From positions 62,001 through 126,000 of the IMG/VR virus record IMGVR_UViG_3300021520_000002: a DNA stretch of 64,000 nt, one strand, 5' to 3'. Position numbers and translations under genes: made by a program. Numbering within the stretch: position 1 is the stretch's first letter; every line of letters starts with the position of its first letter. Under the pieces are notes generated by a model. The model saw nothing but the letters and a program-made list of their open reading frames with translations. It ran no database searches and was not told the DNA's origin. This document shows, piece by piece, positions 4,632 to 37,078 of this stretch.

Positions 4632-5084
4632 ATGATTAGTATAACTTATTTATTCGAATCAGAAAAGGAGATCTTGCCGATGAAAATTGGTATTATAGGA
4701 TATTCAGCAAAAAAATTTGATAAAAAATTAGCTGAAAAATTAATTATAGAAGGTTTAAATAAATTCAAAGCTAAAGAAGGAGATGAGTTAGTTTCTGGAT
4801 TAACTGATTTAGGAATACCAGGATTAGCTTATAGAATCGGTAAAAAAAGAAATATGAAACTTATCGGTATTGCTTGTAAAAAAGCACACGATGAAGATAG
4901 TGTTTGTTATCCTGTTGATAAAGAAATAATAGTTGGAGATAATTGGGGTGATGAATCAAAAACATTTTTAAAATATATAGATATGTTAATTAAAGTTGGT
5001 GGTGGAAAACAATCAATAGAAGAATATAATAGATTCAAAGGTCCTAAAATTGAGTTTGAATTGGCCGCTAAAGAGGATAATTAA
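4632..5084 (+). CDS. SLOG-superfamily (DprA/LOG/YspA-like) nucleotide-binding protein with N-terminal MISITYLFE leader
   Basis: MKIGIIGYS, LVSGLTDLGIPGLAY, LIGIAC, VGGGKQSIEE match the SLOG Rossmannoid pattern. Confidence 0.7.
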   Translation: MISITYLFESEKEILPMKIGIIGYSAKKFDKKLAEKLIIEGLNKFKAKEGDELVSGLTDLGIPGLAYRIGKKRNMKLIGIACKKAHDEDSVCYPVDKEIIVGDNWGDESKTFLKYIDMLIKVGGGKQSIEEYNRFKGPKIEFELAAKEDN

Positions 5085-5085
5085 A

Positions 5086-5247
5086 ATGGAACAACAAACA
5101 GCTCAAATTATACCAATAAATATTAAAAGAGGTTTTAATCCTATTTTTAGTTGTAGTTGTGGAAATGAGTCTTTTAATGAAGGAAATGGAACTGAAATTA
5201 TAATCATTTGTAAAAAATGTGGTAATACTTATGTTGAAGTAAAGTGA
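5086..5247 (+). CDS. small zinc-ribbon protein
   Basis: CSCG...CKKCG; ATG after GAGG (ORF track 5050). Confidence 0.55.
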   Translation: MEQQTAQIIPINIKRGFNPIFSCSCGNESFNEGNGTEIIIICKKCGNTYVEVK

Positions 5248-5254
5248 GGAGAAA

Positions 5255-5395
5255 ATGTTTGGAGATTTTATACTATATATAAAAGAATCTTGGAAAGAAT
5301 TTTGGTGTATTCATAATTATAAATTTGATAGATCGTTATGGTTAATACCAACACATTTAACTGTTAAGTGTGAAAAATGTGGGAGATTAAAATAA
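5255..5395 (+). CDS. 46-aa protein (CxHxY...CxKCG), not in ORF track
   Basis: GAGGAG RBS; MFGDFILYIKESWKEFWCIHNYKFDRSLWLIPTHLTVKCEKCGRLK*. Confidence 0.55.
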   Translation: MFGDFILYIKESWKEFWCIHNYKFDRSLWLIPTHLTVKCEKCGRLK

Positions 5396-5410
5396 GGGGA
5401 GTTTAAGAAT

Positions 5411-6007
5411 ATGTTATCAATAGGTTTTTTATTTGAAGATGAAGAAGATGATATTGATATGGAACAATATTTTGAAGATCGGACAAATTATCATATTGGT
5501 CTTGTAAATAGTTATTTAGATGAAATAATTGAATTACATGATCCACGTTTAGATCTTGCCGTTTTAGAACAAGAAAAAGAAATACATGATCAAAGTAAAT
5601 TTGAAGAACCAGAATATGAACCTTATGTTAAATTAACATGGAATTATTATTTAAAAGATCATGGTAAAAAAATTGATTCTTCACAAGATGAATTAAAGAA
5701 AATACAAGCGGCAACTTTTCATCATGTGAAGAATAATCAACATCATCCTGAATCTTGGGACGAGAATAGTACTATAGAAAGTATCAACAGTAAAGATAGA
5801 GATAAACCAGGGAAAATTGTTGATGCAACAAAAATGTCACTTAATTATATTGCAGCAATGGTAGCTGACTGGATGGCTATGTCAGAAGAGAAAGGAACAG
5901 ATCCATATAAGTGGTGTGAAATGAACATCAATAAAAGATGGAAGTTCACAGAAGAACAAGTTAAATTAATTTATGATCTATTGGATAAGATATGGAAGAA
6001 AAAATAG
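5411..6007 (+). CDS. HD-superfamily (DUF5662-like) phosphohydrolase with N-terminal MLSIGFLFE leader
   Basis: YH...HDQSKF...HHVKNNQHHPE...MVADWMAMS. Confidence 0.75.
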   Translation: MLSIGFLFEDEEDDIDMEQYFEDRTNYHIGLVNSYLDEIIELHDPRLDLAVLEQEKEIHDQSKFEEPEYEPYVKLTWNYYLKDHGKKIDSSQDELKKIQAATFHHVKNNQHHPESWDENSTIESINSKDRDKPGKIVDATKMSLNYIAAMVADWMAMSEEKGTDPYKWCEMNINKRWKFTEEQVKLIYDLLDKIWKKK

Positions 6008-6189
6008 ATGTTAAAACAGAACTAGAAAGATGTAAAAAAGATCCTATATATTTTATAGAGAATTATGTTGAATCGAAAGTTGTTCAATTATTAGATTTTA
6101 AAAAGACTAAAGATGAAAAAATTAAAAAGGAAACAGAAAAAAGAATATTAAAAGTATTATTAGAACATGCTGAAAAACTAGAATGGTGA
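5992..6189 (+). CDS. 65-aa protein resembling the N-terminal helix of the large terminase
   Basis: ELERCKKDPIYFIENYV versus EWFKCRENPFYFILNYV in the terminase at 15449. Confidence 0.6.
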   Translation: MEEKIDVKTELERCKKDPIYFIENYVESKVVQLLDFKKTKDEKIKKETEKRILKVLLEHAEKLEW

Positions 6190-6197
6190 GGTAAATC

Positions 6198-6773
6198 ATG
6201 ATATCAATTCTTGCCGAATATGAAAAAGAATTTTTTACTTACAATACAATATCTTCTGATATGTGGTATGAACTTATTAAAGAAGCTAAAAAAGAACAAA
6301 AAATTTTTTTTGATCTTGAAAATAATGAATCTAAAAAACAACAGAGAACAATAAAAATATTAGATAAAAAAGATACTCCACCAACAAATGAATATATTTT
6401 TAATTGTGAATTATTTACAGCTGGAGGAGATTGGGAAGTTCCTGTAAATTATTTTAGGTGTCAATTAATAAAAGGTTATTTAGAAGATAGAACAAGTTAT
6501 AGAAGACCATATTTTATTTATATACCTAAAAAAATAGAAGGAAATTATAATCTTGTTCCAAATTTAAAATCTGATGGAACTTGGCATGCTCCTGATAATT
6601 CTTATTATAAAAAAGGAATTGATCCAGAAGTGAATGATAAAGATTGTTGGAAAGCTTTAGATGGATATTTGAGAAAAATAGTAGAAGATTATATTGAAAA
6701 AAGAAAGTTAAAACAATTGGAAGGACAAACATCAATTGAAGGAAAAGAATCAAATGAGAATACAACTTCGTAA
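6198..6773 (+). CDS. hypothetical protein with MISILAE leader variant
   Basis: GAGGT RBS; 191-aa ORF. Confidence 0.7.
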   Translation: MISILAEYEKEFFTYNTISSDMWYELIKEAKKEQKIFFDLENNESKKQQRTIKILDKKDTPPTNEYIFNCELFTAGGDWEVPVNYFRCQLIKGYLEDRTSYRRPYFIYIPKKIEGNYNLVPNLKSDGTWHAPDNSYYKKGIDPEVNDKDCWKALDGYLRKIVEDYIEKRKLKQLEGQTSIEGKESNENTTS

Positions 6774-8996: not shown

Positions 8997-9728
8997 ATGT
9001 ATAATATTTTAACAGAACAAGAACAATTTAATATGATGAATGAATCTGCAGCCGCGCTTAGGAAAATGAAAAATGAGAAAGTTATTAAAAGAGATCCTTT
9101 AAAAGTTTTATCTGAAAATCTTCAAAGTATTAATATCGGTAGTGATCTTTTTGAATCATTCGATAGTTCATCTTGGGAAGGAAAAGTAAAAGTTGATGTT
9201 TTATATTTTGAACAACTACTTCAGAAATTAAATGAAGAACAGGTTAATTTAGTTGAATCTGCTCTTAATGTATATTTTAAAGATATAAGATTAATTTATG
9301 AATTTGTTAATCTTAAACCAGAGATTTATGGTAAAAATATTAATACTAAGATTTTAGAAGATTCAAATGAAGTAAGTCAACAAAAACTTTCATCCGTTAT
9401 TTATGAATATCTTGATAGTTATTTTTATGGACTGGCACCTGAAAAACGTGTAGATAAATATATTGAAACATCCAGAGAATTAACTAAAACTTTGATTAAT
9501 GAAGGTGTAGAAGCTGAGGAAGCTATTGAATTTAGTGTAAAGACAACAGTTATGGAAAATTTACTTACTAAAATAGCTTTCCCATTTGCAACATGGTCTA
9601 GAATACATTATTTAATAGAATCAGAAGACTATGGTAAAGTATTTGATCGTAAGGCATTGATAGATTTAGTAGAGTCATTTCAGAATAAGGTAGGGTCGAT
9701 ATCGAAGATTGTTGCCGCTGTAATCTAA
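8997..9728 (+). CDS. hypothetical helical protein, possibly head-associated
   Basis: AGGAGG RBS; N-terminal ILTE, MNE, LSE and LFE motifs resemble protease sites. Confidence 0.7.
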   Translation: MYNILTEQEQFNMMNESAAALRKMKNEKVIKRDPLKVLSENLQSINIGSDLFESFDSSSWEGKVKVDVLYFEQLLQKLNEEQVNLVESALNVYFKDIRLIYEFVNLKPEIYGKNINTKILEDSNEVSQQKLSSVIYEYLDSYFYGLAPEKRVDKYIETSRELTKTLINEGVEAEEAIEFSVKTTVMENLLTKIAFPFATWSRIHYLIESEDYGKVFDRKALIDLVESFQNKVGSISKIVAAVI

Positions 9729-9750
9729 CTAATCACAAGAGGGGTGTATT

Positions 9751-10989
9751 GTGTCTAAAGTTACTGAAATATATAATAAACTAGATCAAAATTTAAGTTC
9801 TAATGTTACTCTAGTTAATGATTTAAATACTGAGATGAGTAGACTTGTTTCTCAGGCATATTCGCAAGCGATGGCTTCTGATGAAGGTTTTTGTTTTAAG
9901 TTTACACTCCCAATTACAGCAGTAACAAATTTATTCCAGCTTGTTAAACTCGATCAAGATGAAGTTGGAAAAGCGTTTCAAGAAGATTGGAAGTATCCAT
10001 CACACGCAAATATGTATGCTGATCCATATTACCATATATTAATGTTATTATTATATTATGGTCTTCGTAAGAAAAAAGAAATTATGGTTGAACATGCTTT
10101 ATTTCTTATTCTTATAAAAACATGGAATGGTAGAAAAGCTAAATATCTTAAATTTTGTGATAAACGAGTTATGAATTATGTTGTAACACATATGGTAAAT
10201 AATAAACATCTTATATCTAAATATGAATCTCCGTTAAATTTGATAAAAGAATATTTTATTCCAACATTATTGTCGAAGTATAGCAGTGAGATCTTAAAAG
10301 ATCCTTATAGAATGAGACAATTGTTTATGCAAATTTGGGTTAGAGTAGATCAAATATTTGGGTTTAACATGAGAGTAAATCCAATTACCGGAGTTAATGA
10401 AGCACAGGGTGGAATTTTACCATTGTATATGAAAGCTAAGAAAGACAATTTAACATTAGCAACACCAACAATTGCAACTGGAGATGAGGAAGAACCTGAT
10501 TTTGATCAGTATTCGACAATACATAATAGAGATGAAATAACATCAAGTACAACTGATTTTATTACAATGAATACTCAAACTCAGTATCCAGCAAGTTTTA
10601 TTTCAACTGTTAATGGATATACAAAAGTATCATCACATGTGATTGAAGAAATGTTAAAAGCAATGCATAGTCATAAGTTTTATGATATTCTTCATAATAT
10701 TATATCTATCATTTTATCTAGAACAAGTGTTGTTGATAAAAGTGATATTTGTGGTAATGATTTTATGGTAAATGTTAAGAAAAATGTTATTTCATCTAAG
10801 AATACTGATGATATAAGAAACATTCAAAAGTTATTGGATGCTCTTTGTATTCAGATATTTGATGGACCAAGTTTAAAATTAGATTTTAATAAGTATAGTA
10901 ATGTTCAAAGAATTCAAATCCGAAATGTTTTAATTTATGGATTGATTTATAATCTGAAGAAAATAAATTGTCAGGGACAAAGTATTTAA
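9751..10989 (+). CDS. probable phiKZ gp68 / AR9 gp226-like sigma-like subunit of a non-virion RNA polymerase
   Basis: DPYYHILMLLLYY...KYLKFCDKRVMNYVVTHMVNNKHLISKYES resembles the conserved core of that family as recalled; size 412 aa is compatible. Not verified by search. Confidence 0.45.
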   Translation: MSKVTEIYNKLDQNLSSNVTLVNDLNTEMSRLVSQAYSQAMASDEGFCFKFTLPITAVTNLFQLVKLDQDEVGKAFQEDWKYPSHANMYADPYYHILMLLLYYGLRKKKEIMVEHALFLILIKTWNGRKAKYLKFCDKRVMNYVVTHMVNNKHLISKYESPLNLIKEYFIPTLLSKYSSEILKDPYRMRQLFMQIWVRVDQIFGFNMRVNPITGVNEAQGGILPLYMKAKKDNLTLATPTIATGDEEEPDFDQYSTIHNRDEITSSTTDFITMNTQTQYPASFISTVNGYTKVSSHVIEEMLKAMHSHKFYDILHNIISIILSRTSVVDKSDICGNDFMVNVKKNVISSKNTDDIRNIQKLLDALCIQIFDGPSLKLDFNKYSNVQRIQIRNVLIYGLIYNLKKINCQGQSI

Positions 10990-10994: not shown

Positions 10995-11030
10995 ATATCG
11001 GCAAGATCTATTACTAAATCTTGCCGATAT
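10995..11030. repeat. intergenic palindrome copy 1 (ATCGGCAAGAT...ATCTTGCCGAT)
   Basis: ATATCGGCAAGATCTATTACTAAATCTTGCCGATAT. Confidence 0.95.
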
Positions 11031-12136: not shown

Positions 12137-15100
12137 ATGGCAGATTTACCAACGCTCAGTAATGCAACACCTGAAGATTTTATTGATTATTATTTTAATA
12201 ATTTAAAAACAGATCTAGGAGTTTTTGATATTGAAATAGCTAAAGTTGGATTTATTGGCTTTTTAATGAATCTCCTTGGAAATACACATTTTGATGTAAA
12301 AACATATTATGATGGATTATTTAAAGAAGCTTTTGTAGCGACGGCTCAAAGTGAAGAGAGTCAAAATTTACATGCTGCTATTTATGGATATACACCAGCT
12401 TTTGCAATACCAGCAACAGCAACAGGCTCAATTGAATTCGATTTTAATACAGCTCTTTCTACAAAAAATCCTAAGACAGTTAAACGAGAAGTATTTATTG
12501 GATATAGAACAACAGATCCAACAGGAACAACTGCAGAAAGAATTGGTGATATTACATTTAATTCTTCAGTTTATAAATTTACAATTGATGCTTTATATAA
12601 ATTTGTTCAAGAAATTACAAATCCTGGTACACCGTCAGAATCTAGTTCATATTATACAGAAGTAACAACAGTTGATGGAACAAAAATTATAATTCCATCA
12701 TCATCAGCTTATATAATTGTACCACTATATTCAACAACCCAATATAATTATAAAACTTATGAATTTCAAATTCCAAAATATAATCTTGGCTCATTTCAGA
12801 CATATTATTTTACAATTGATAGTGGTTATTATCTTTCTGCTGTTGAAGTTTATATTACTCCTACTGGTGGTGTTGAAGAAGAATATGAGGTTCAATTTGT
12901 TAAATATCTTGCTAGTGGAGATGATAAAACAGTATTTCTTAAAAAGATATCATCAACAAATTATATGCTTGAATTTGGTTCTGGTACTAGAGGAGTTTGG
13001 GTATCTCAATATAATGCTCGAGTAGTTATTAAATATTGTGAAGGAACTGCTGGTAATTTAATTGATTCATCATCAACAAAAATTGCTATTAATTGTGAAA
13101 CTTATAGTAAAGATTATGAAATAGATCCAATAACTGGGAATTTAATTCCTTTTAGTGGTCAAACAATAATAAAATCAAATTCAGTAGTTACAGATTTTGA
13201 ATCATCTAATGGTGGTACAAATTCTTTATCTGGTGATAATTTAAGAAATGAAATTGTAAATTTTATACAATCGAGGGATAATTTAGTTAGTGAAACTGAT
13301 TTTTATAATATTACTAGTGAAAATACTTTTTTAAAAGATTTTAAATTTTTATTTAAAAAGACTAATGTATATGATAATATTTTTCATCTATATAGGGCTT
13401 TTAGAGATAGAAATCAAGAAATATGTTATACAACTGATTATTTATTACCAATAGTAAATATTAATTTAAGTCCAGAAAATCTTATTTTAACATCTATTGT
13501 TGGTACTGGTTCATTAATACCAGGTCATACATATGCATATAGGGTTAGTGCTTATGATTCTTGGGGAGTATCTATTCCTTGTGATGAAGTTAGTATTATA
13601 TTAGCTGTTGGAAGTGATAGTGTAAGAATTACTTGGGACGCTATGAATAATGCTGTTGGTTATAGAATATATGGTAGAACTGTTAGTTCACAAGGAATGT
13701 ATTGGGATACAACTGATTTATTTATTGTTGATGATGGGAGTGCTGGTACTCCAGAAATTGTTCCAAGTGGTGCAACTTTAACTGATATGATTTATGATCC
13801 AGTTTTCTTTTTAGATGATTCATTTAGTTGTACACCAGATTCAGTAACTAATATTTTTTCAAGTGTAAATCATGGATTAGATGATGATGATGTTATATGT
13901 TTCTCTGGTACAGGTGGTGGAGTTACTGTTCAAACATATTATTATATTATTGATTCAATAGTAGATTCTTTTAAAATATCTCTTAGTAGAAGTGGAACAG
14001 CCGTAACATTAACAGATAATATAGTTAATGGTTTTTTCCGACCTTTTATTAGTCCTTTTTTTTATAAAGGAAATTCTAGATTAGGATATTTTGATGGATA
14101 TATTTTAGATCAAAATTTGTTGGTTCAATTTAGTGAAGTTATTTTAAGTACAAATACTATAGGTACTGGTTTTGATGTTCCTGTGATTTATCTTAATTTA
14201 AATTATAATATGATTACAGAGACAACAATATTACAAGTTAAATCATATCAGGATATTTCAGCATTACAGTTTGTTATTACTGTTTTTGGTTCTACAATAG
14301 CAAATCAGACTATGGTTTGGAATCCAGTAACAGATGCATTTGAATGGAATTATACTAATAGTTTAACATTTGGTATTATGGAAGAAGAATTACAAATTGA
14401 AGTTGTTGGATATGAATTTACAACTGTTTTTGTTGAAAGATTTAGAAGTAGAACAAGTAGTTTTTATCAAATATTAAATATAAGTGATCAATTAAGGTTA
14501 TTTAGATATGTTTATGGTACTAATATGTATATATTAAATCTTCCAGTAATATATTATGGAGGATTTATTAGTGATTCCGATTATTATTTAGATAAAATAT
14601 ATGAATTTATGATTAGTGCAAGTTTTCAAAATAATAGAATGATAACTGACAATGTTCAAGGTAGATTTTTAAATACTTATATTATTAAATCACCAGTGAT
14701 TGAAAATTGTTTAGTTCAGAAGGGAGAAGTATTTTCTGATTATAATTGGTTGGTTGGTATTTTAGAAACTTTAGATGAACCTTATTTAACAGTACCATTA
14801 GTTGGAGATAGATATCGAGTAAGTACTACTCCAGTTGGAGGAAGTGTATTTGATGGACATGCTAATGAAATAGCAATATATGCGGTTGGTGGTTGGACAT
14901 TTTATATTCCCATTGAAGATGATGGAGTTTTTGATGCAACATCAAGATTTGCTTATATTTGGGATAGTTCTGCTTGGGTTAGTATTCCTTCTATTAGATT
15001 GCCTTTAAAAATGATTGTGAATATTAAAGTGAATAAGGATTATACAGATAGAAATCCAACAGATCTTGGTCAAGTAAAAACTAATTTAATATTAACATTA

Positions 15101-15389: not shown

Positions 15390-15421
15390 ATCGGCAAGAT
15401 CTGAAAAATGATCTTGCCGAT
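15390..15421. repeat. intergenic palindrome copy 2
   Basis: ATCGGCAAGATCTGAAAAATGATCTTGCCGAT. Confidence 0.95.
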
Positions 15422-15448
15422 GTTCCAAAATTGGAGGCGAAAAATTTT

Positions 15449-25941: not shown

Positions 25942-26178
25942 ATGATTTCAGTAGTAGATTTATTTGAAGTGGGTGGTCCAAATGATGATAGAACATCTTT
26001 TGCGAATGAACGAATTGCTACGTTACAAAGGGCTTTCAAATCTGGAAGAATGAAAGCTCCTGATTATCAAGCTCAATTAAAACAATTTATGCAAATGAAA
26101 CGTGGAGTTCCATCAAAACAGATGCCAGAAAGTGAAATTAAAACGGCAGGAACTTATTTAAATTCTTCACCACAATAG
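25942..26178 (+). CDS. small protein with MISVVDLFE leader
   Basis: GAGGTG RBS before ATG 25942 (ORF track 25930). Confidence 0.7.
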   Translation: MISVVDLFEVGGPNDDRTSFANERIATLQRAFKSGRMKAPDYQAQLKQFMQMKRGVPSKQMPESEIKTAGTYLNSSPQ

Positions 26179-26190: not shown

Positions 26191-27078
26191 ATGGTTTTTG
26201 AAACTAAAAAGAGTGGGTCAAATTCATTATTAAAAGCTTTTACATCAAGATATGTTGCTGAAGATTTTTTTGTAAATATAGCTCGAATTGTACTTTACCC
26301 ATCCGAGTTTGGTAATTTCATATCAGATAGGACAAATTCTGTAATTGATTATATGAGAGATTTTTTAAAGAGTTTGTCATTATTGTCTAATAATTTACAG
26401 TTAGCAAATAGTAAAGTTGTTAGAAGCCAAATCACTATTTTAACTTCTTTATTAACAATTCGAGAATCAAGTCCGATTTTATTAACTTACGAAAATGTTA
26501 ATCAACATTTGATGCCTGGACAAGATTTAATAGTTACTAAACTTATTCAAAAATGTGTTGATGAAAAGATTACAGATACTGATGAGTTTCGTAAAACTAC
26601 AGATGAAGTTATTAATACAATTTCATCTTATTATGAAATGATGTCTGCTGCAGATAGTATTACAATGGTTGGTAATCTTTATGATTTGATTAATGAAGGT
26701 AATCTTGTGCCGATGGAGACATTAAAAAGTTATAAAGATATTATTAATGTTGCTTATAATGATTTATCAAAATTACAATCATTAAGTAAAGCAGAATCAG
26801 CGGCAGATTATTTTGTTATTTCAGATGATAAATCTTGTGATGTATTATCTAAAACATTAGTTGATTATGTTGCAAAGGGTTTTTCAGTATTTAAAACTGG
26901 TTTTGATTTATTTGATAAACATATTGATGGAGTTGAGAGTTCATCAGTACACTTAATTGGTGCGCCTTCTAATCATGCAAAAAGTTTATTTACAATTAAT
27001 TTATCATATAGAATGATTAAAAACAATCTTGCTGATTTTGATCCACAAGATTGTATATTATTTGTAACTTTAGAGGAT
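26191..27078 (+). CDS. DnaB/gp41-like replicative helicase, exon 1
   Basis: KTGFDLFD, Walker A-like GAPSNHAKS, FVTLED; ends at the group I 5' splice site. Confidence 0.85.
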
Positions 27079-28251
27079 TAAATATGGTCCTCTTTAAATC
27101 TCGTGAATTCGGTGAATATCCAGAAGATGGACAATACCGAGCCAAGCTTCTATATTAGACTGCTAATCTAGTATAGTTGAAGGTGTAACGACTATCCCGA
27201 AAGGGAGTACACTCAAGCGAGTGGAAGCGCGAGACATCCTAATCTAAATTAAATAAAAATTTTAAATGGAGGACAGGGTTTGGCCACCTTGGTAAACTAC
27301 CTATATAGTTTGCCTTACTCCAGAAAATAATATTTTGTAGGAGATATTATGATAATAAGATATTCAAAGAAATTAGAATCAGAAGTATATAAAATGACGC
27401 CAGAAGAAAAGCTTGAAAAATTGGTGTATTTTTATATTAATGGAATGTCTTTAGATCATTGTAGTTGGACATTTACTTGTGATAAAGATTTAATTATTTC
27501 TGCTTTAAAATATAAAGATGTATTTGAACATAAAATTTGTAGTAAATGTAAAATTTTAAAATCTTTTGATGAATTTTATATGAATGAAAGTATGGGTAAG
27601 GAAACAAATCGATCTGGTGTTTCTTGTCAATGTCGAGAATGTGTTAGTAAAAATGGTAAAAATTATTTTAAGAATAATAGAGATCATAAAAGAAAATATG
27701 ATAAAGAATATAAAAGACAACCTCATGTATTAGAACAAAGATTAGAATATCAAAAAAAATATTTTAAAGATCCAATAAATTTAAAGAAAAGTGCACAAAG
27801 AGCGAATAAAATATATCATAGTGATATTAAAAAAAGATTACATACAATAGTTTCTGTTTATATTAATAAATGTTTATTTGGTGGTAAAAAGGGAATTTCA
27901 ATAAATAAAATTCTTGGATATACTATGGATGATCTTAAAATACATCTTGAAAAACAATTTGATAATAATATGACTTGGATTAATTATGGATTTTATTGGG
28001 AAATTGATCATATTATTCCAGTTAGTAATTTTACATTTATTTCATATGAAGATGAAGCTTTTAAGAAATGTTGGTCATTGGAAAATTTACAACCACTTGA
28101 AAAAACAATAAATAGAATAAAAAGTAATAAATTGAACTTTGTAGTGATTTAAAAATTAGATTAGGATGAAGAGATAGTCTATTCTCATAGGCAACTATGA
28201 GCTGCAGATAATGCTGCGAATAAGAAGTAGCGATTCTTATTGAATAAAAAG
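27079..28251 (+). mobile_element. group I self-splicing intron (1173 nt) with HNH ORF in P8
   Basis: P1 AGAGGAT/GTCCTCT with U.G at the splice site; P7 GACTAT/ATAGTC; P8 CATCCTAATCTAA/TTAGATTAGGATG brackets the ORF; terminal G 28251; P10 TAAATAT/ATATTTA; splicing restores frame (VTLED|DIYKLVRRF). Confidence 0.9.
27349..28152 (+). CDS. intron-encoded HNH homing endonuclease
   Basis: CSKC and CREC zinc motifs; WEIDHIIP...NLQPLEKTINRIKSNK. Confidence 0.9.
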   Translation: MIIRYSKKLESEVYKMTPEEKLEKLVYFYINGMSLDHCSWTFTCDKDLIISALKYKDVFEHKICSKCKILKSFDEFYMNESMGKETNRSGVSCQCRECVSKNGKNYFKNNRDHKRKYDKEYKRQPHVLEQRLEYQKKYFKDPINLKKSAQRANKIYHSDIKKRLHTIVSVYINKCLFGGKKGISINKILGYTMDDLKIHLEKQFDNNMTWINYGFYWEIDHIIPVSNFTFISYEDEAFKKCWSLENLQPLEKTINRIKSNKLNFVVI

Positions 28252-29226
28252 GATATTTATAAATTAGTTCGACGTTTTGCATCAATATATGGAAATTATA
28301 AATTTGATTCTTTAAAAAGATTATTTGCAAAGTCATATGAAATGACAAGAGCAACACAAATTATGGATATGTCTACAGAAGCTAGTGCAAGATTGTATGG
28401 TAATTTAGATGGAGTATTTAAAAATGTTTTGAAGACAAGTATTGCAAAAGTAACTCAGGGAAAAGTAAATATTGCAATTAAACATTGTTCTGAAAATTCA
28501 TTTTCTCCTGGTGATCTTGGACGGTTTATAGATCGTTTAAATATCGAAGGATATAAAGTTAAAATAGTTTTTGTTGATTATTTAGATGTTATGAGTGCTA
28601 CAATTAATAGGTTTGGTGGAGCTGGAAAAGAATATGATATCTTAGGTCAAATCACACAGGAGTTACGTAACTTAGCTCGGATACATAAAGTGCCGATAAT
28701 AAGCCCAACTCAGAATAGAAGAGAATCTGAAAATGTTAATACTAAATTAAGTAACGAACAAACAGGGGATAGTTATAAGAAAATAAGATATTCAGATTTT
28801 ATCTATTCGTGTCGTTTAAGACCAGATCTTAACTTTCTATCTGAGGGTGTTAGACATCATGTTATTACAACAAAACATAATCCAGATGGAACAGTAGTTG
28901 ATTTTATTTCTCCAGAACTTATTAAGATTAAAGAAAGTTTATTTCAAGTATTAGTACCATTTGAAGTTAAGATTACAAAGTCAAAAGATTCAGAAAGAGA
29001 TTCTATGAAGTTTTTCTTATTCTGTAAAGAAAATTTAAGAATGTATAATAATGTTGATGAGTATATTAAAGATGCACCAATCATTGCAATTAATAGTGAG
29101 AAGTTAGAAAAGGATATTTCTATTTTAACAAATTTAGCAATTACAAGTGTTTCAAATGGTTCGGAAGGATTTTTTGAAGAAGAACAAAATGATCAATTTG
29201 GGATGAATGTTATACCTTTTGCTTAA
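28252..29226 (+). CDS. DnaB/gp41-like replicative helicase, exon 2
   Basis: Walker B VFVDYLD, ELRNLA, PIISPTQNRR, GDSYKK, ITKSKD. Confidence 0.85.
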   Translation, partial: DIYKLVRRFASIYGNYKFDSLKRLFAKSYEMTRATQIMDMSTEASARLYGNLDGVFKNVLKTSIAKVTQGKVNIAIKHCSENSFSPGDLGRFIDRLNIEGYKVKIVFVDYLDVMSATINRFGGAGKEYDILGQITQELRNLARIHKVPIISPTQNRRESENVNTKLSNEQTGDSYKKIRYSDFIYSCRLRPDLNFLSEGVRHHVITTKHNPDGTVVDFISPELIKIKESLFQVLVPFEVKITKSKDSERDSMKFFLFCKENLRMYNNVDEYIKDAPIIAINSEKLEKDISILTNLAITSVSNGSEGFFEEEQNDQFGMNVIPFA

Positions 29227-29272: not shown

Positions 29273-29308
29273 ATATCGGCAAGATCTATTTCTAGGTCTT
29301 GCCGATAT
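29273..29308. repeat. intergenic palindrome copy 4
   Basis: ATATCGGCAAGATCTATTTCTAGGTCTTGCCGATAT. Confidence 0.95.
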
Positions 29309-30376: not shown

Positions 30377-32485
30377 ATGTCATTCTTTGGTGAGTTATTT
30401 AAAGACGAAGCACTTGAAAATTTTGATGCTAGAATAGATACACTTGTTAATCAATTTCCATCAATTAATAGAGAAGAACCAGTTGATTTATTGTCAGGAG
30501 ATTTTATTTCATCATTTATGGAACATTCTTCAAAAGATGAACTGGAAAAAGTTCTTCAAGGAATTTCAGTTTCTAGAGATAGACTTGAAAGATACGCGGT
30601 TTATGATGAAGCATATAAATATGTTCCAATTCTTAAGAGAATGATGAAAGTTTATGTTGCTAATATTTTACAAAAGAATCCAGTAACTGGTAAAAGTATT
30701 TTAATTCAAGAATCTGGAGATTTGACAAGTGAGAAGCGCCAAAATAAAGAAGTATTAGATCAAGCAAAAGATTTTTCTAATAATTGTATTAAGACATTTG
30801 GTTTATTGGATAGATTAAAACATAAGATTTTACCGAATGAACTAACCTATGGTGACTGTTATCTTGAAGTAGTAGATGTAAATCAAGAAATTAAAAAATC
30901 TGATCCAGAAGGTGCTGCCGCTGTTCAAATGACAACATTATTTGAAGGTGAATATTTGAACATGAGTAAAGAAGTAGAACAAATGAAGAATCGTGCAAAT
31001 GGACATTTGCCGTTAGGACAAATTGATCAACTTCTGATGAAGACAGCTAATTATTTGGCAGAGATTGAAATAGCTTCTTTTCCTGAGTCGTATGATCCTA
31101 ATGAAAAAGATGATGAAGATAAAAAAAGAGATGTAAATAACTATAGTAATAGTGGTGAAGGTAATGAAAAAGAAAATAAAAAGAAAAGCGAAACTATAGA
31201 TTTTAATGATATAGTTTTAAAATTACATAAACCACAACAAATTATAGTTTTACAAACAAATTATGGTTCAACTATAGGATATCTTGAAGTTACAAAAGAT
31301 GAATTTCCTCAAGTATTTAATTTAACTCAATCTTTATCAACTTTAGTTGGACGTATAACATCACTTATAGGAAAAGATCAATTAAATCAAGATAACGTAA
31401 CTGATAGAATTGTTCGATTTATTGTAAAGCAGGCATTGGATAAAGCAGATAAAGCTAAAGCTTTTAATATGGATGATCAACAAAATGCCCAGTCAATTAA
31501 TGACATTTTGAAGAATCTAGATCCAAATGTTTATACATATATTAAAAGACTTATAATTGAACAAGGATTAAATCAAACGCAGTCTCAATATCTTCACAAA
31601 TTAAAAATAAGATTCATATCAGCAAGCCGTATGATAGCTTTTACAATTCCGTCAAACGAATATGATCCATATGGTATTTCATTTATTGATAATTTAGTAT
31701 TTCAGTGTAAGTTGTATATTCTATCGCAGTTGTCAAATGTAATTATGAAGTTGAGTAGAGCTGCACCAGTCAGGAAATGGACTATCGATACTGGTAGTAC
31801 ACAAATGCACGCAAACTTGATTCAGAAACTGAAAAGAGAACTCTACAATACAAGAGTTACACTTGATGATTTAGGTAGTTTTAAATCGATTCCAAAACTG
31901 TTAAGTGATTTCAAAGATATGTTTGTATTAGCTAAAGGTGGTAATAAACCAATCGATGTTGAAGTAACTTCTCATGGTGATCCAACTATTAGAGTAGCTG
32001 ATCTTGAGGATGCTAGAAGAGAAATTATGAGTCTTTCAGGTATTCCACCAGCGTATTTAGGTTATGCAGATGTAATAGAACTCAGGGAACAGTTGGTTCA
32101 TACTAATGTTTCTTTCGCGACAGAAATTATTGATATGCAAGAAAACATAACAGCTGGTCTTACAAAATTTGTAGATATTGTTGCTGAAATTTTAAAGGTT
32201 AACTATAAACCATCGGAATATGTGCAGATTAAATTGATTCCTCCGATAGTTTTAATTCTTCAATTAATTGAAATGACATTATCATCAATAGGAAATATTA
32301 ATGGAATTTTTCAAACATTACAAACTCCAGTTGATCCTTATTTCTTCTTAAAACAATATGTTCCTTATATTGATTGGGAAGCTTTTAAAGAAGCGGCAGA
32401 TGTTTATACTACTGCTCAGAAAACAAAAGCTGAAATTGATGCAAATAAGGGCGGCGGAGGCGATCCTGGAGCTGGAGGAGGATAA
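30377..32485 (+). CDS. portal protein (T4 gp20-like)
   Basis: YGDCYLE, PYGISFID, KLSRAAPVRKWTIDTG, LSGIPPAYLG; upstream of protease and capsid genes. Confidence 0.85.
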   Translation: MSFFGELFKDEALENFDARIDTLVNQFPSINREEPVDLLSGDFISSFMEHSSKDELEKVLQGISVSRDRLERYAVYDEAYKYVPILKRMMKVYVANILQKNPVTGKSILIQESGDLTSEKRQNKEVLDQAKDFSNNCIKTFGLLDRLKHKILPNELTYGDCYLEVVDVNQEIKKSDPEGAAAVQMTTLFEGEYLNMSKEVEQMKNRANGHLPLGQIDQLLMKTANYLAEIEIASFPESYDPNEKDDEDKKRDVNNYSNSGEGNEKENKKKSETIDFNDIVLKLHKPQQIIVLQTNYGSTIGYLEVTKDEFPQVFNLTQSLSTLVGRITSLIGKDQLNQDNVTDRIVRFIVKQALDKADKAKAFNMDDQQNAQSINDILKNLDPNVYTYIKRLIIEQGLNQTQSQYLHKLKIRFISASRMIAFTIPSNEYDPYGISFIDNLVFQCKLYILSQLSNVIMKLSRAAPVRKWTIDTGSTQMHANLIQKLKRELYNTRVTLDDLGSFKSIPKLLSDFKDMFVLAKGGNKPIDVEVTSHGDPTIRVADLEDARREIMSLSGIPPAYLGYADVIELREQLVHTNVSFATEIIDMQENITAGLTKFVDIVAEILKVNYKPSEYVQIKLIPPIVLILQLIEMTLSSIGNINGIFQTLQTPVDPYFFLKQYVPYIDWEAFKEAADVYTTAQKTKAEIDANKGGGGDPGAGGG

Positions 32486-32487: not shown

Positions 32488-32976
32488 ATGCTTTTAGTAG
32501 AAGTTTTATTTGAACAAACTCCATCTCAAGTTCCTCCGGTACAAATTATTCAACATGTTACTCATACTCCAAAAGAACCTGATTCTAAATCGGTGGAGCC
32601 GAAACAACAGGAACAACCTGCCTCACAGGCACAAGCTGTTCCTCAGGAACAACAAATTCCACAGGGTCAGGAAACTGGAGACGAAGAAACAACTGGGGAA
32701 GAAATTCCAGAAGATGGACTTGGTGATGGTGGTCAGATGCAAGAGGAAGGTATTTCACCAGATCTTTTGCCGATTAAAAAATATTATTTGATTAGTAAAT
32801 TAAAAGAATTAAAGAATCAACTTATAGAATATAGTTTACAGAACGATGAACTTGATATCTTATTAAAATTTGCAGACAATCTATCATACAGTTCATTATT
32901 AAATGTTGGACTAATAATCACAGATGTTATTGGACAACAATTAGCGAGGTTAAAAGATGGCAAAAATACCAATTAG
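32488..32976 (+). CDS. acidic Gln/Glu-rich prohead core-like protein with MLLVEVLFE leader
   Basis: Between portal and protease; disordered Q/E/P-rich N-terminal half. Confidence 0.55.
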   Translation: MLLVEVLFEQTPSQVPPVQIIQHVTHTPKEPDSKSVEPKQQEQPASQAQAVPQEQQIPQGQETGDEETTGEEIPEDGLGDGGQMQEEGISPDLLPIKKYYLISKLKELKNQLIEYSLQNDELDILLKFADNLSYSSLLNVGLIITDVIGQQLARLKDGKNTN

Positions 32977-33721
32977 GAAATATAATTTTATATTTGAGAC
33001 TACCTCGATTAGTTCACGTGATGATATCAAGGTTTTAGAGGAAACAAAGTTACCTAATGGAAATGGAAAAATTTCAGCTTCTGTTAGGTTACAGGAAGCA
33101 GAAATGAAAAATAGTAATAGTCGATATTACTCAAATTCAATCTGTGAATCTATAGTGAATCAGTTATCTCCAAAAGCAAGTAGTCGTTCACTTTTAATGG
33201 AGATCGATCACCCTTTGTTTGTCTCTGACGATCAAAATGTTCTCAAAAGGAGAGCATCAATTGTTGAAATTAATAATTGTGGTAGTTTATTAAGAGAGAT
33301 AAGTTTTGCTGATAGAAAAGTGGGTGGTATATTTGAAACGCTTAGTGGTTTCAAAGGTCCAGATTTATATAATATAATTATGAAAGATAAGGTTGATGTA
33401 GGATTTTCGTTGAGAGCTCTTGGAGCAGTCGAACAACTTCAGGATGGAACAATAATGGTTAAAGATCCTATCAAACCAATTACTTATGATGTAGTTTCAA
33501 ACCCAAGTCACGCAACAGCAAAAGTTCTCGAATTCTTACCAGAAAACGTTACAGATTTTATGTCTGAACATAGTATGATTTATGAAGCAGCTGATATGGA
33601 GATGCTGGATCTAGATCATATAACTGTTGCAGACAGTACAATTTCATTAACAGAATTTTTCGACGACATTTATAAACAAAAATTTTCGGAAGTTATTACT
33701 AGAATAACTTTTAGAGTTTAA
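32957..33721 (+). CDS. prohead core protease (T4 gp21-like)
   Basis: NSNSRYY, EIDHP, VGFSLRALG, TYDVVSNPS. Confidence 0.9.
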   Translation: MAKIPIRKYNFIFETTSISSRDDIKVLEETKLPNGNGKISASVRLQEAEMKNSNSRYYSNSICESIVNQLSPKASSRSLLMEIDHPLFVSDDQNVLKRRASIVEINNCGSLLREISFADRKVGGIFETLSGFKGPDLYNIIMKDKVDVGFSLRALGAVEQLQDGTIMVKDPIKPITYDVVSNPSHATAKVLEFLPENVTDFMSEHSMIYEAADMEMLDLDHITVADSTISLTEFFDDIYKQKFSEVITRITFRV

Positions 33722-33749: not shown

Positions 33750-35357
33750 ATGTACGAACAAGCGATATTTGAAAATTATGAAATGTTCTTAAATGAGCAT
33801 AGTGATGAATTTTCTACTCCAAGTGGAGCATTGAAACTCATTACTGACAACGGTATGTTCAGATCTTATATGGAAGGTTTGACCAACGGCCTTGATTCAA
33901 ATCAGAGAGCTGTTGTTATGTCAGTAGCAAATCGTCAGAGGGAATATCTTTTAACAGAATCCGCAAACGTTCCAGGTTCTACACTGGCATTTGGTTGGAC
34001 TGTTCTTTCTTTCCCTATTCTTGTTGATATTTATGCTGAGCCAGTTGTGTCAGAGCTTTGCAATGTTTATCCAGTATCTTCACCAGTAGCTTCAATTCCT
34101 AGAATCAAAATTATGGCCTATATTAGGGGTTATGATGGAAACGTAACTCAGGTTCGTATGCCTACATTGAATCAGGCAGTAAGACCTGGTGCACTTAATC
34201 TTACAGTAACACCAGCCGTAAGTAATAACATTTTTACTATTGCTTCAGCTGCAGTTGCTCCTGCAACAGTAACATCAGATATGTACAGAATTAACAGGAG
34301 ATATACTCTTCTTACAGCTGTTCAGATTAATGAAACAACTGCTCTTGGTCCTGTTGTTGCACATAACGTATCAGTAACAATTAAACCAGACAACAGAAAT
34401 CAGTTTGTGGGTAGTTTTACATTTAATGATAATACTCCTGCTCCTGTTGGTCCTGTAGCAATTGTTGGTACTTTAAATGGTCATATTGACTATGATTCAG
34501 GCATATTCCAGTATCAGATTGTTTATGCAGTTGGTGCAACAACTTCTACTTTTGCAACAGTTTCAGCAACTATGACTATTCGTTTTATGTCTCTGACAAC
34601 TCAGAATGGTCGTATAAAAGTTAAGATTCAGACAGAAATGACTGATGTAAGCATCGATCAGAATGAAGATTTCTTGATTGAACTTCCTCCGGAAGATATT
34701 CAGGATTTCAGAGCAATCTTTAAGATTGACATTTTGAGAACACTTTCAGAAGCTATTAAGAGACAGATCATGTTAAACAAAGATCAGGATCTTGCATTCT
34801 TCTTAGCAGCTGCAGAAGGTGATATGGCATCTAATGGCGCAGCAGAAGCATTGAATCTTGCAAGTTTTGATGTAACTGGTGGACGTTTTGAGCCTAACAA
34901 AGTCATCGACGTTTTCAAAGCAGTAATTCCTAAGATTTCTATTCTTACTGGAATTATTCGTAGAAACTTCAACATGTATCCTTCTTATCTTGTCGCTGGT
35001 TTGAAGACTGCCGCATTACTTAGATCAGTTCAGACTTTCGCTCTCCAGATGCCAGGTATTGGAAATGGCGACGGAGCAGTAGGTTGGGCAGGGGATGTTG
35101 CACAGATGTTGAAGATGAAAGTTCTTGAGTCCAATGCAATCGCTGAAGGTAAGATTTATCTTTCAACGAAAGCTCCGAACAATGCTCTCGAGAAATCAGC
35201 AATTGTAGATTTGATTTATCAACCTCTTTACATTGTAACTGAGGTAACTGATGGTCAGACCAGGAACTATGTAAGATCCAGGACACTCATTGAAATTCCT
35301 AGAACAGATGGTCTTGGTGTTATTAATATTACTGGTCTTGGCACATATTTTACGTAA
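33750..35357 (+). CDS. major capsid protein
   Basis: 535 aa directly after the protease; probable maturation site YLLTE|SA near residue 70; C-terminal YQPLY...VRSRT; highly-expressed codon usage. Confidence 0.85.
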   Translation: MYEQAIFENYEMFLNEHSDEFSTPSGALKLITDNGMFRSYMEGLTNGLDSNQRAVVMSVANRQREYLLTESANVPGSTLAFGWTVLSFPILVDIYAEPVVSELCNVYPVSSPVASIPRIKIMAYIRGYDGNVTQVRMPTLNQAVRPGALNLTVTPAVSNNIFTIASAAVAPATVTSDMYRINRRYTLLTAVQINETTALGPVVAHNVSVTIKPDNRNQFVGSFTFNDNTPAPVGPVAIVGTLNGHIDYDSGIFQYQIVYAVGATTSTFATVSATMTIRFMSLTTQNGRIKVKIQTEMTDVSIDQNEDFLIELPPEDIQDFRAIFKIDILRTLSEAIKRQIMLNKDQDLAFFLAAAEGDMASNGAAEALNLASFDVTGGRFEPNKVIDVFKAVIPKISILTGIIRRNFNMYPSYLVAGLKTAALLRSVQTFALQMPGIGNGDGAVGWAGDVAQMLKMKVLESNAIAEGKIYLSTKAPNNALEKSAIVDLIYQPLYIVTEVTDGQTRNYVRSRTLIEIPRTDGLGVINITGLGTYFT

Positions 35358-35372: not shown

Positions 35373-35406
35373 ATCGGCAAGATCTAAATTAATAGATCTT
35401 GCCGAT
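35373..35406. repeat. intergenic palindrome copy 5
   Basis: ATCGGCAAGATCTAAATTAATAGATCTTGCCGAT. Confidence 0.95.
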
Positions 35407-35409
35407 TAT

Positions 35410-35438
35410 TTTATTTTTGGAGATTGAATATGATAAGT
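35410..35438 (+). repeat. 29-bp direct repeat (5'UTR/RBS/start), copy A
   Basis: TTTATTTTTGGAGATTGAATATGATAAGT, identical at 36783..36811. Confidence 0.95.
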
Positions 35439-35648
35439 TTGTTTGAAATGTTTAAATTAAATGTTGATTCTAAACCACCATCAGAATGGAGTAATACAAA
35501 TACAAAAGTTTATGCTAAAAATCAACCAACATTTGAAGAATTAATAGCTCATCGCAATAATAAACAACCAATTAATAATTTTGATGATAGTTTAAGAGCT
35601 AAACAAGTATCATATCACTTCTTGAAAAAATTAAAATTAAATAAGTAA
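35430..35648 (+). CDS. small protein with MISLFE leader
   Basis: GGAG RBS before ATG 35430 (ORF track 35424). Confidence 0.65.
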   Translation: MISLFEMFKLNVDSKPPSEWSNTNTKVYAKNQPTFEELIAHRNNKQPINNFDDSLRAKQVSYHFLKKLKLNK

Positions 35649-35673
35649 ACAAAGAAAATGGAGGCGTAAATAA

Positions 35674-36570
35674 ATGGCATTAAGTGAATTTTTAAAAGCG
35701 ATGGAAATAGTTAGTAATATTAAGAAACAAGAAGTTCCACTTCCAATAGCCAGAAAGAGTGCTGTCGTAAGTCCTCTTAGGGTTGGAGACGATTTATCAT
35801 TAAGATCATCATTAACTTCACCTGTTAACTATGATAGACAAATGACTAAATTGATATTTGATTTAACAGAATTTATGGCCGCTGAAGGTCAACCATTAAT
35901 TAAAGAAAATTTTGAGTTCTTTTGTAAAACAACATCTAATATTGATAAGATTTGTTTGATTTGGGGTTTATATAAAACTACATACGAATCATTAGGAAAG
36001 AGAACTTTTAAGTGTGATAAAGAGAATTGTAAAGCTGAATTTAAACAGGATGTATTATTAGACAGTTTAGTTAAAGAAGATACTTTCTGTCCTTGGGAAG
36101 AGGAAGAACTTCCTTTTCATGAATTTATTTGGGAGATAGTTGTTCCTTATGAACAGTTTGAATTTATATTTGAAAGTAGAATACCATCAATCAGTGATAA
36201 TAACAGAGTATTAAGTAATTTATCTATTGAGTCAGTTCAGGAAAATTTTCAGACAGGTGGTAATTTATTTAGTAGAAGTGAACAAATGACACTTCTTAAT
36301 AGATCAGTTGCAATTAAGAGTGTAGTTAATCCAAATAATGTTCCTAAAACAGAAAATATGCAAGAGTTATTAATTGCTTTCAGAAAATATGTTCCTCATA
36401 TAGTTTCTGAAAAATTCTTTATTGAATACAATAAGAAATTTGATAAATATTATCCAAAATTTTATACAATGATACCTTGTCCTCAGTGTGGTAATGAAAT
36501 AAAATTCACGGTAGACCTGGAATCAGAATTTTTTCGGAGAAGCTTATTTGGTGGAGGGGAGGGCAGCTAA
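35674..36570 (+). CDS. baseplate hub assembly / tail chaperone (T4 gp26-like)
   Basis: IDKICLIWGLYKTTYE, CxxxxC, RIPSISD, C-terminal CPQCG...EFF. Confidence 0.7.
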   Translation: MALSEFLKAMEIVSNIKKQEVPLPIARKSAVVSPLRVGDDLSLRSSLTSPVNYDRQMTKLIFDLTEFMAAEGQPLIKENFEFFCKTTSNIDKICLIWGLYKTTYESLGKRTFKCDKENCKAEFKQDVLLDSLVKEDTFCPWEEEELPFHEFIWEIVVPYEQFEFIFESRIPSISDNNRVLSNLSIESVQENFQTGGNLFSRSEQMTLLNRSVAIKSVVNPNNVPKTENMQELLIAFRKYVPHIVSEKFFIEYNKKFDKYYPKFYTMIPCPQCGNEIKFTVDLESEFFRRSLFGGGEGS

Positions 36571-36769
36571 GAATTATAAATATTTTGTTGATACATTTAT
36601 CTTATATCAAGCTATGTTTGACAATACTGGAGATCTTAATTCTATTCTCAATCTTCCATATCCTTTATACAATGATATTATTCTCAAACAGATTGAAGAG
36701 AAGAAAAGAGAAAAGAAGCTTCATGATGAAAATATGAGAAAAATGAAAACACAACCGAAAAAGAAATAG
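36548..36769 (+). CDS. small baseplate assembly protein (gp51-like/tail chaperone second ORF)
   Basis: Overlaps the gp26-like gene; ILNLPYPLYNDIILKQIEEKKRE. Confidence 0.55.
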   Translation: MVEGRAAKNYKYFVDTFILYQAMFDNTGDLNSILNLPYPLYNDIILKQIEEKKREKKLHDENMRKMKTQPKKK

Positions 36770-36782
36770 TTATCGGCAAAAA

Positions 36783-36811
36783 TTTATTTTTGGAGATTGA
36801 ATATGATAAGT
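36783..36811 (+). repeat. 29-bp direct repeat (5'UTR/RBS/start), copy B
   Basis: Identical to 35410..35438. Confidence 0.95.
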
Positions 36812-37078
36812 GTTAGTATATTATTTGAAATTGGAAATAGTCCAGAGATGAGAGATAAATTATTCAAATTATCAAATTCATATCAGAAATCAATGAAATT
36901 ATTAAAAGAACCAGAAGATATTTCTGCAAAACAAAAATTAAGTGCTGCAGGAAATAGAGCACTTCAATTAGGAAGAAGTATTTCTTATAGATTACATGGG
37001 CAAAATCCAGAAACAACCATGAAAATGGCAGGAATATATAAATCAATGCTTCAACGTGCACAAGGTGAAAAAAAATAA
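36803..37078 (+). CDS. small basic protein with MISVSILFE leader
   Basis: GGAG RBS before ATG 36803 (ORF track 36797). Confidence 0.7.
   Translation: MISVSILFEIGNSPEMRDKLFKLSNSYQKSMKLLKEPEDISAKQKLSAAGNRALQLGRSISYRLHGQNPETTMKMAGIYKSMLQRAQGEKK

Follow-up and report, generated by a model that had tools for sequence, protein, structure and literature searches.

The window, by which we mean the whole 64,000-nt stretch of DNA analyzed here (positions 62,001–126,000 of IMGVR_UViG_3300021520_000002; 285,572 bp, lake water), comes from a 285-kb freshwater jumbo phage, a myovirus of about 28% G+C that is uncultured and known from sequence alone. Seven genes of the window, all on the plus strand, encode proteins that open with a short peptide, here called the leader, of the consensus MIS[IV]xxLFE or a variant of it. 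A first-pass annotation had picked out these seven N-termini and read the leader as a portable tag that loads diverse proteins into the capsid; all seven are present exactly where it had placed them. The motif occurs strictly at the N-terminus, is under selection as a peptide, sits on unrelated cargo, and is absent from homologues outside the clade.

Leader genes and the head module

The SLOG gene (4632–5084, 150 amino acids) begins with MISITYLFE (4632–4658), followed by the linker SEKEILP and, from Met17, a domain of the SLOG/LOG fold. The DUF5662 gene (5411–6007, 198 amino acids) consists of MLSIGFLFE (5411–5437), an acidic linker, and the DUF5662 domain, also from Met17; its orthologue in a relative starts MLSLSYLFE. 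Gene 6198 (6198–6773, 191 amino acids), for which no Pfam or PHROG family was found, carries the short leader MISILAE (6198–6218) and is missing from the 95% relative, L008, where no orthologue lies between the DUF5662 gene and a gene for 718 amino acids. Gene 35430 (35430–35648, 72 amino acids) likewise has a short leader, MISLFE (35430–35447). Two small basic proteins carry the nine-residue form: the product of gene 25942 (25942–26178, 78 amino acids, mature isoelectric point (pI) 10.0) starts MISVVDLFE (25942–25968), and that of gene 36803 (36803–37078, 91 amino acids, mature pI 10.1) starts MISVSILFE (36803–36829). Gene 25942 is conserved in the relatives L003 (MISITNLFE) and L002 (MLPVSFLFE), and a homologue search with it returned only three proteins, a small family. 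The orthologue of gene 36803 in L003 directly follows the capsid gene and keeps the hairpin–Shine-Dalgarno–leader cassette described below (L003 12550–12630), with the start codon ATA. The window genome and L003 arrange their small leader genes in different orders.

The seventh leader gene (32488–32976) encodes an acidic, Q/P-rich protein of 162 amino acids that starts MLLVEVLFE (32488–32514; MFLVEVLFE in L003, MFLCEILTE in L002) and occupies the position of T4 gp67/gp68. It is flanked by a putative portal gene (30377–32485, plus strand), assigned by position and size only and without a Pfam or PHROG match, and by the genes of the prohead protease (32957–33721, plus strand, 254 amino acids) and the major capsid protein (33750–35357, plus strand). 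This order of portal, small acidic protein, protease, and capsid protein mirrors T4 genes 20, 67/68, 21, and 23, and no gp22-like scaffold gene is found between the protease and capsid genes. The description of the protease as gp21-like is borne out by BLASTP (25% identity to T4 gp21 over 157 residues, E = 9e-7); the protein also matches Pfam Peptidase_S80 (26.8 bits against a cut-off of 23.4) and PHROG 207/3014, head maturation protease. The capsid protein belongs to PHROG 20655 (major head protein) and is similar to the major structural protein of PDB 7x30 (E = 1.6e-9), with no detectable similarity to T4 gp23. Its gene matches IMGVR_UViG_3300021520_000002 at 100% identity.

The capsid protein had been credited with a cleavage-type site, and we observe it as LLTE↓S (arrow, candidate cut) at residues 67–70 (33948–33959), conserved in two relatives and aligned with ILME↓S of the 7x30 protein. 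Beyond what had been noted before, the leader motif itself recurs on the capsid protein and on the protease. The capsid protein starts MYEQAIFE↓N (33750–33773), and the protease contains KYNFIFE↓T at residues 8–14 (nt 32978–32998), a candidate self-cleavage site that is invariant as KYNFIFE in three genomes, with its [L/I]-F-E in the NFIFE region at residues 11–14. Thus [L/I]-F-E occupies positions P3–P1 near the N-terminus of the protease (NFIFE↓T), the capsid protein (AIFE↓N), and the gene 32488 product (VLFE↓Q), and is kept in relatives. Both capsid-protein motifs are conserved in L003 and L002 (MELPLFEN; MLLTE↓A). UvsX and the helicase do not have the motif.

One 3.5-kb environmental RNA contig spans gene 32488, the protease gene, and the capsid gene (two lake metatranscriptomes). 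The RNA contigs of the two metatranscriptomes end at 35374 and 35397, at the hairpin that follows the capsid gene, where DNA depth in the same sample is flat. Although some contamination of the RNA libraries with DNA is possible, the fall in depth at the hairpin favors genuine RNA.

Several genes of this region are interrupted. The DnaB-like helicase is split into two open reading frames (ORFs) by an ORF of the endonuclease VII/HNH type (26191–27081, 27349–28152, and 28240–29226), and it is likewise in two pieces in L003 and L002. The portal and major capsid genes are intact in the window; in the two relatives they are interrupted by inserts with endonuclease-like ORFs (L002 4460–8151 and 9406–11880; L003 4860–8390 and 9598–12523), a pattern suggestive of essential head genes invaded by mobile introns, inteins, or free-standing homing endonucleases. 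At the gathering score, Rfam detected no intron or other RNA family in the window except three tRNAs.

Position and distribution of the leader

Each of the seven leader ATGs in the window has a Shine-Dalgarno sequence of the GGAG/GAGG type 6–9 nt upstream. In genes 25942, 35430, and 36803 the longest ORF starts 2–4 codons before MIS; we took the MIS start because the position of the Shine-Dalgarno sequence and the orthologues favor it. The strict DNA pattern M-I-S-[I/V]-x-x-L-F-E occurs three times in the window against 0.00 expected from shuffles, and the loose pattern M-x-x-x-x-x-L-F-E five times against 0.19, a count reached in none of 100 shuffles.

A pattern scan over 111 kb of the genome (39%, reached through matches to the leader pattern) revealed a set far larger than the seven proteins first listed, and one common to the whole clade. 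Here, 19 ORFs begin with the nine-residue leader and about eight more with variants of 6–7 residues; the short forms MISLFE and MISILAE, both present as reported, are joined by MISIIFE, MISVIAE, and MISMVAE on the same contig. The leader always runs from Met1 behind a Shine-Dalgarno sequence, and its L7-F8-E9 is invariant save for Ile7 in one protein. All 25 ATG starts of the type M[IL]S[ILVM] preceded by a Shine-Dalgarno sequence have Glu at residue 6, 7, or 9, and each of these 25 MIS-type starts ends in hydrophobic-x-Glu. The tripeptide [LI]FE is found 45 times in the 33,420 residues encoded by the 111 kb, with Glu exactly at residue 9 in 16 cases against about 0.1 expected. Two other N-termini, MYNILTE of gene 8997 and MVFE of gene 26191, were considered as leaders and rejected as chance, the relatives reading MYNFLTD and MDFASN, respectively.

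The codons of the leader point to selection on the protein. Ser3 is encoded by TCA (7), AGT (6), TCT (3), and AGC (1), the remaining leader codons follow ordinary genome usage, and no shared promoter or upstream DNA was found for the leader genes beyond the Shine-Dalgarno sequence, except in the cassette of genes 35430 and 36803. Because Ser3 draws on both codon families and the upstream DNA is unshared, the constraint acts on the peptide and not on the DNA. The three tRNAs of the window, identified with Rfam on the minus strand as Leu(UAA) (56425–56512), Ser(UGA) (56815–56904), and Met(CAU) (60385–60457), read TTA, TCA, and ATG, which are the codon of Leu7, one codon of Ser3, and that of Met1; the coincidence is probably mere AT-rich codon usage.

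These data bear on the idea that the motif has a role away from the capsid, as a degron for timed proteolysis, as a localization signal (for a phage nucleus or the membrane), or as a translation-initiation or operator element on the mRNA. Some phages of the phiKZ/AR9-like group build a nucleus, and the phage studied here has split RNA polymerase genes like those of phiKZ and AR9 and a sheath with remote similarity to the AR9 and PBS1 sheaths. Moreover, the motif lies at the start codon, a frequent place of RNA-level control, and in two genes 29 nt over the Shine-Dalgarno sequence and the first three codons are identical. We nevertheless regard such a role as improbable. An RNA element does not fit the use of both serine codon families or the unshared upstream DNA of the other genes, and import into a nucleus does not fit UvsX and the helicase, which do not have the motif, whereas the capsid protein and the prohead protease do. 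A Sec, Tat, or lipoprotein signal is disfavored by a length of nine residues that include Glu and by the lack of a basic or long hydrophobic stretch. Finally, the invariant hydrophobic-x-Glu end is the cleavage rule of gp21-type proteases (PMC9026906).

The leader was also sought at database scale. In IMG/VR (2.9 million contigs) the strict DNA pattern gave 53 matches in 47 stretches, of which 11 lie on this contig, 5 on the relative that shares 95% capsid identity, and at least 8 on contigs that tblastn confirmed as relatives; a broader pattern added little among the matches listed. In 596 Gb of bacterial and archaeal genomes the strict pattern occurs in at least 120 stretches, with one match each. 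Among the matches listed there, five resemble gene starts, and two of the five lie on contigs syntenic with the phage, namely L117 and L125, the latter a 256.7-kb contig in a Lentimicrobiaceae bin of metagenome-assembled genomes (MAGs). The contigs with multiple leaders (L025/L204, L032/L037, L038, L039, and L040) are true relatives, whose neighboring genes show 35–65% amino acid identity, and L038 has six leader genes consecutively. DNA of the phage is present in many freshwater lake metagenomes and in two metatranscriptomes. Two clade contigs are held in Bacteroidota MAG bins, a weak hint at the host and the sole one. No cultured relative was found among 50,697 GenBank phages by megablast with the head module or tblastn with the capsid protein, and a search for cultured relatives with the DUF5662 protein gave one weak match. 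A search from the protease alignment, with chosen N-terminal patterns, added only L054, an ordinary T4-like locus, and within the limits of the searchable library we found no literature describing the MIS[IV]xxLFE leader.

A second type of leader is observed on the relative contig L042 (3300009502_001749), where two proteins (5322–5837 and 9329–9760) start MKSIREQLFE and MKTIREQLFE. This leader has ten residues and the same L-F-E end, and five of its ten positions match MKTYQEFIAE of T4 IPII/IPIII, a match too short to argue for homology. A scan with MK[ST]I.E.LFE was convincing in one relative only, and this type was not found in the examined parts of the window's genome.

Cargo proteins and the conserved hairpin

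Downstream of the leader the proteins are unrelated, as the first-pass annotation had stated: the 19 leader proteins fall into 18 BLASTP families. Pfam profiles always start past the leader, at residues 13–42 (C39 at 13, DUF5662 at 17, NT5C at 19, LigD_N at 29, and HD at 42). Orthologue pairs share M1, S3, L7, F8, and E9 without exception; identity falls to 46%, with insertions and deletions, over the following 12 residues, the most variable part, and is 72% in the cargo. The AlphaFold2 model of the SLOG protein has a mean predicted local distance difference test score (pLDDT) of 88, with 52 for residues 1–10 and more than 89 in the core. The profile starts, the variability of the linker, and the pLDDT of residues 1–10 together indicate an architecture of leader, flexible linker, and cargo; the second Met of the SLOG and DUF5662 proteins is the ancestral start.

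The SLOG assignment of gene 4632 is confirmed by the Pfam domains of its homologues (PF18171/PF18306), by the model, and by Foldseek, which retrieves LOG, Moco-carrier, and TRPM SLOG structures (E about 1e-5 to 1e-6 for LOG and Moco-carrier). In an alignment of SLOG homologues (A1), the residues of the motif GGGxQS..E (G123–G125, Q127, S128, and E131) are invariant or nearly so. The leader, M[IL]S[IVL]xxLFE, and its variable linker are found in the seven closest homologues only, and distant SLOG proteins start at the domain with M..IGVVGYS. The same alignment contains four proteins from other metagenomic contigs (P0008, P0010, P0011, and P0019) with a different short N-terminal extension, of the type M[ST]R[LF]E..; the alternative extensions read MTRLEQYI, MSRFESYI, and MNNFKEYL in place of MIS..LFE and may be the leader of another phage lineage on the same cargo. 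The product of gene 5411 had been taken for an HD hydrolase. We find no HD match in Pfam and no useful relative among PDB sequences; the protein is instead assigned to DUF5662 (Pfam E = 5e-24, residues 17–191 on profile positions 1–154), in agreement with the protein atlas.

The portability that had been proposed for the leader is thus seen in unrelated folds, with Pfam profiles and distant homologues that begin after it. Descent of a fast-evolving paralogous family, or chance, might produce such similarity in place of a transferable tag, and some bearers are indeed tandem small genes (four in a row in L048, two of them detectable paralogues). This explanation is very improbable, since the 19 proteins belong to 18 unrelated families, distinct Pfam folds start past the leader, homologues outside the clade are leaderless, and shuffles give about 0.2 occurrences against 5 observed. 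Alignment A1, the family count, and the shuffle counts effectively refute it.

Returning to the leader as a transferable tag, the cargo of this genome includes further domains (DUF5661, LigD 3′-phosphoesterase, and HD), and that of relatives includes a C39-like peptidase and a homologue (E = 5e-14) of Tad6, an inhibitor of type I Thoeris (PMC13728456). On L005, which carries the leader and whose clade membership is not established, the cargo resembles an NT5C-type nucleotidase with a weak, sub-threshold score (20.8 bits against a cut-off of 24.8). PADLOC gave no match for ten cargo proteins. A mature pI of at least 9 is found in 19 of 27 leader proteins as compared with 28 of 84 other small ORFs (p = 0.0014), which is consistent with packing against DNA.

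The nature of the cargo also bears on a reading in which the leader is a cleaved propeptide whose bearers are mainly parts of the prohead core, scaffold, or inner body, degraded or structural, and not delivered effectors. Many bearers are tiny (52–97 amino acids) and have no recognizable domain, gene 32488 is in the core position of gp67/68, a gp22-like scaffold gene is absent between the protease and capsid genes, and phiKZ-type heads have an inner body of many cleaved proteins (PMC10052503). On the other hand, no structural role is plausible for the SLOG, DUF5662, LigD 3′-phosphoesterase, HD, C39 peptidase, and Tad6-like proteins, and the cargo set varies among close relatives (gene 6198 is missing in the 95% relative), as in accessory genes of an arms race and not as in a conserved scaffold. 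We consider it unlikely as an account of most bearers, though plausible for the tiny ones and for the product of gene 32488.

One leader protein is paired with an RNA-polymerase-beta-like gene in three genomes (L024 4858–6787, contig positions about 183–185 kb; L117 950–2919; L040 about 13769–14439). In the conserved pair, a basic protein of 52–59 amino acids starting MISITRLFE overlaps the start of a gene for a 592-residue RNA-polymerase-beta-like protein. That this protein is an adaptor taking a virion RNA polymerase into the capsid is pure speculation.

A conserved hairpin with 13-bp arms lies just 3′ of the capsid gene (35373–35407) and is followed by the cassette that opens gene 35430. 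Its sequence consists of ATCGGCAAGATCT, a loop of 7–9 nt, and AGATCTTGCCGAT, and it sits after many genes, including those of the capsid and sheath. In the window, copies are located at 10997–11029, 15390–15422, 22255–22287, 29275–29307, 35373–35407, 44262–44296, about 58538–58561, and about 62312–62335; L048 has copies at about 2130–2160 and 3850–3880. At the copy behind the capsid gene, where the environmental RNA contigs end, DNA depth spikes, as a repeat would lead one to expect. The hairpin is likely a terminator or RNA-processing element, and the mechanically called start of ORF 22251, which the hairpin at 22255 overlaps, is probably wrong.

Traces of the hairpin are also found at leader genes. 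A half hairpin comprising the 3′ arm AGATCTTGCCGAT is located inside the SLOG gene on the plus strand (4669–4681), where it encodes the linker residues E-I-L-P directly before the ancestral Met, which suggests a relic of an intergenic hairpin at the point where the leader joined the SLOG cargo gene. A second half copy of the 3′ arm lies at 37079–37091, and L024 has 12-nt half-sites within coding regions at about 5515 and 10903. In addition, the cassette TTTATTTTTGGAGATTGAAT plus ATGATAAGT opens both gene 35430 and gene 36803 (35402–35438 and 36775–36811), with an identical stretch of 29 nt, made up of 20 nt upstream and the first 9 nt of the gene.

A candidate capsid-targeting leader and its known counterparts

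The capsid-targeting sequence (CTS) of the T4 internal proteins was reportedly described by Mullaney and Black in 1996. It attaches proteins to the core of the prohead, and gp21 cleaves it off, with residues 4 and 7 serving targeting and residues 8 and 10 processing, and foreign proteins can enter the T4 head by means of it (PMC9026906, PMC7411985, PMC3012670). All computational tests run here went the way of the capsid-loading interpretation, which they support at the level of sequence: the leader is probably a capsid-targeting propeptide of the T4 kind, which would be cleaved and whose cargo would be packaged and ejected with the DNA. In such a pathway the first four residues (M-I-S-I/V) would dock the new protein on the core of the assembling prohead, and after closure of the shell the gp21-like protease (32957–33721) would cut after Glu, with Leu/Ile at P3 and Glu at P1. 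The leader would then diffuse away, the mature and mostly basic cargo would stay inside with the DNA, and in the next infection it would enter the cell along with the DNA, before any phage gene expression. Given the nucleotide-directed enzymes and the Thoeris-inhibitor homologue of a relative, the likeliest purpose would be a pre-packaged arsenal for counter-defense and host takeover; these roles of the cargo are conjecture, and some small leader proteins may instead belong to the core or inner body.

Several observations weigh against the leader being such a propeptide. P1′, the position after the candidate cut, varies widely (I, D, S, V, Q, G, E, A, F, N, L, K), in contrast with the small residues that follow known T4 cleavage sites. 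Three leader genes, for an HD enzyme and proteins of 96 and 52 amino acids, are grouped in one block with the genes for ribonucleotide reductase and RNA polymerase and not with structural genes. Characterized members of the S80 family, the best Pfam match of the protease, cut after A/S/G-x-E, so that the specificity of the protease is deduced from its candidate substrates and not from the enzyme family. With at least 27 tagged proteins, the arsenal is much larger than the handful of T4, and we infer its cleavage, packaging, and ejection from sequence features.

More tentatively, the leader could be a clade-wide label that marks all pre-loaded, injected proteins, at least 27 per genome, among them enzymes directed at nucleotides and the ends of nucleic acids (SLOG, HD, DUF5662, and LigD 3′-phosphoesterase), a C39 peptidase, and a Thoeris-inhibitor homologue. 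Genes would be recruited through recombination at the repeated hairpin, which would add the hairpin–Shine-Dalgarno–leader cassette. This is possible, and two traces fit recruitment by the hairpin: the half hairpin in the SLOG gene (4669–4681) and the identical cassette before genes 35430 and 36803. If it is true, scans of metagenomic phages for lineage-specific leaders would offer a general, culture-free route to injected counter-defense proteins.

Proteins carried in the capsid act before phage gene expression and are thus the earliest phage response to host immunity. As a rule, only virion proteomics of cultured phages reveals them. In the present clade, the nine residues seem to be a label by which candidate injected effectors can be listed directly from sequence, most of them without an assigned function, some enzymatic, and one a homologue of a Thoeris inhibitor. 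The T4 logic of targeting and cleavage would also reach a very distant lineage, in which a gp21-like head module and phiKZ-like RNA polymerase genes occur together, and a short portable tag with its matching protease could serve as a tool to load large capsids with foreign proteins.

Among known N-terminal signals, those of the Sec, Tat, and lipoprotein systems differ from the leader, which comprises nine residues without a basic residue or Cys and has a terminal Glu. Head-carried proteins that are delivered with the DNA and act before phage gene expression include DarA, DarB, and Hdf of phage P1 and the ejection proteins of P22. Delivery with the DNA would be the likeness to the cargo described here; the difference is that the P1 and P22 proteins are not known to depend on a shared cleavable leader and are incorporated into the head by ordered protein–protein assembly.

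The phage resembles the systems of phiKZ (gp175), 201phi2-1, and SPN3US (gp245) in that Peptidase_S80 is the best Pfam match of its protease and in being a giant myovirus with multisubunit RNA polymerase genes. Split genes of this kind (beta-like, as in phiKZ and AR9) lie elsewhere on the contig together with ribonucleotide reductase, whereas the window includes genes for UvsX, the large terminase, the tail tube, and a sheath with distant, faint similarity to the sheaths of AR9, PBS1, and phiR1-37. As in the phiKZ group, many head-internal or ejection proteins are expected, with cuts after Glu and mostly N-terminal propeptides. The S80 proteases characterized so far remove long propeptides, with cleavage after A/S/G-x-E (PMC10052503). 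In contrast, P3 is Leu/Ile in the leaders, the protease, the capsid protein, and the core protein studied here, and one leader of nine residues is reused, whereas the phiKZ-type propeptides are protein-specific, measure 20–254 residues, and have no common leader.

The closest counterpart is the CTS of T4, found on IPI, IPII, IPIII, and Alt, together with the short N-terminal propeptides of gp67, gp68, gp21, gp22, and gp24. Both are peptides at the extreme N-terminus (6–19 residues in T4) with a Leu/Ile-x-Glu end; our reading of the T4 genome gives MKTYQEFIAE for the internal proteins, MEGLIE for gp67, MLLIPE for gp68, and MNEPQLLIE, MLKEQLIAE, and MAKINELLRE for other head proteins. Both phages have a gene for a gp21-family protease between the portal and capsid genes, and the same type of site is present on the protease, on core proteins, and some 65–70 residues into the capsid protein (FLTE↓A at residue 65 of gp23); T4 gp21 itself has a conforming LIE site at residue 9 (PMC9026906). 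In both, one leader is found on unrelated, mostly basic, and fast-changing cargo, which in T4 counters host defenses, and both show a two-part logic, with upstream residues conserved in addition to P3 and P1.

The differences from T4 lie in sequence, scale, and lineage. The leader has no sequence homology to the CTS (MKTYQEFIAE / MKTFKEF...), with only Met1 and the final Glu in common, and its consensus MIS[IV]xxLFE has an invariant Phe at P2 and Ser at position 3. Its phage is an uncultured 285-kb jumbo phage with phiKZ-like split RNA polymerase genes and a capsid protein unlike gp23, and several recognizable enzymes are among its cargo. The principle would be that of the T4 CTS, whereas the consensus, the scale (at least 27 tagged genes in 39% of the genome, as against a handful), the enzyme cargo, and the lineage are new.

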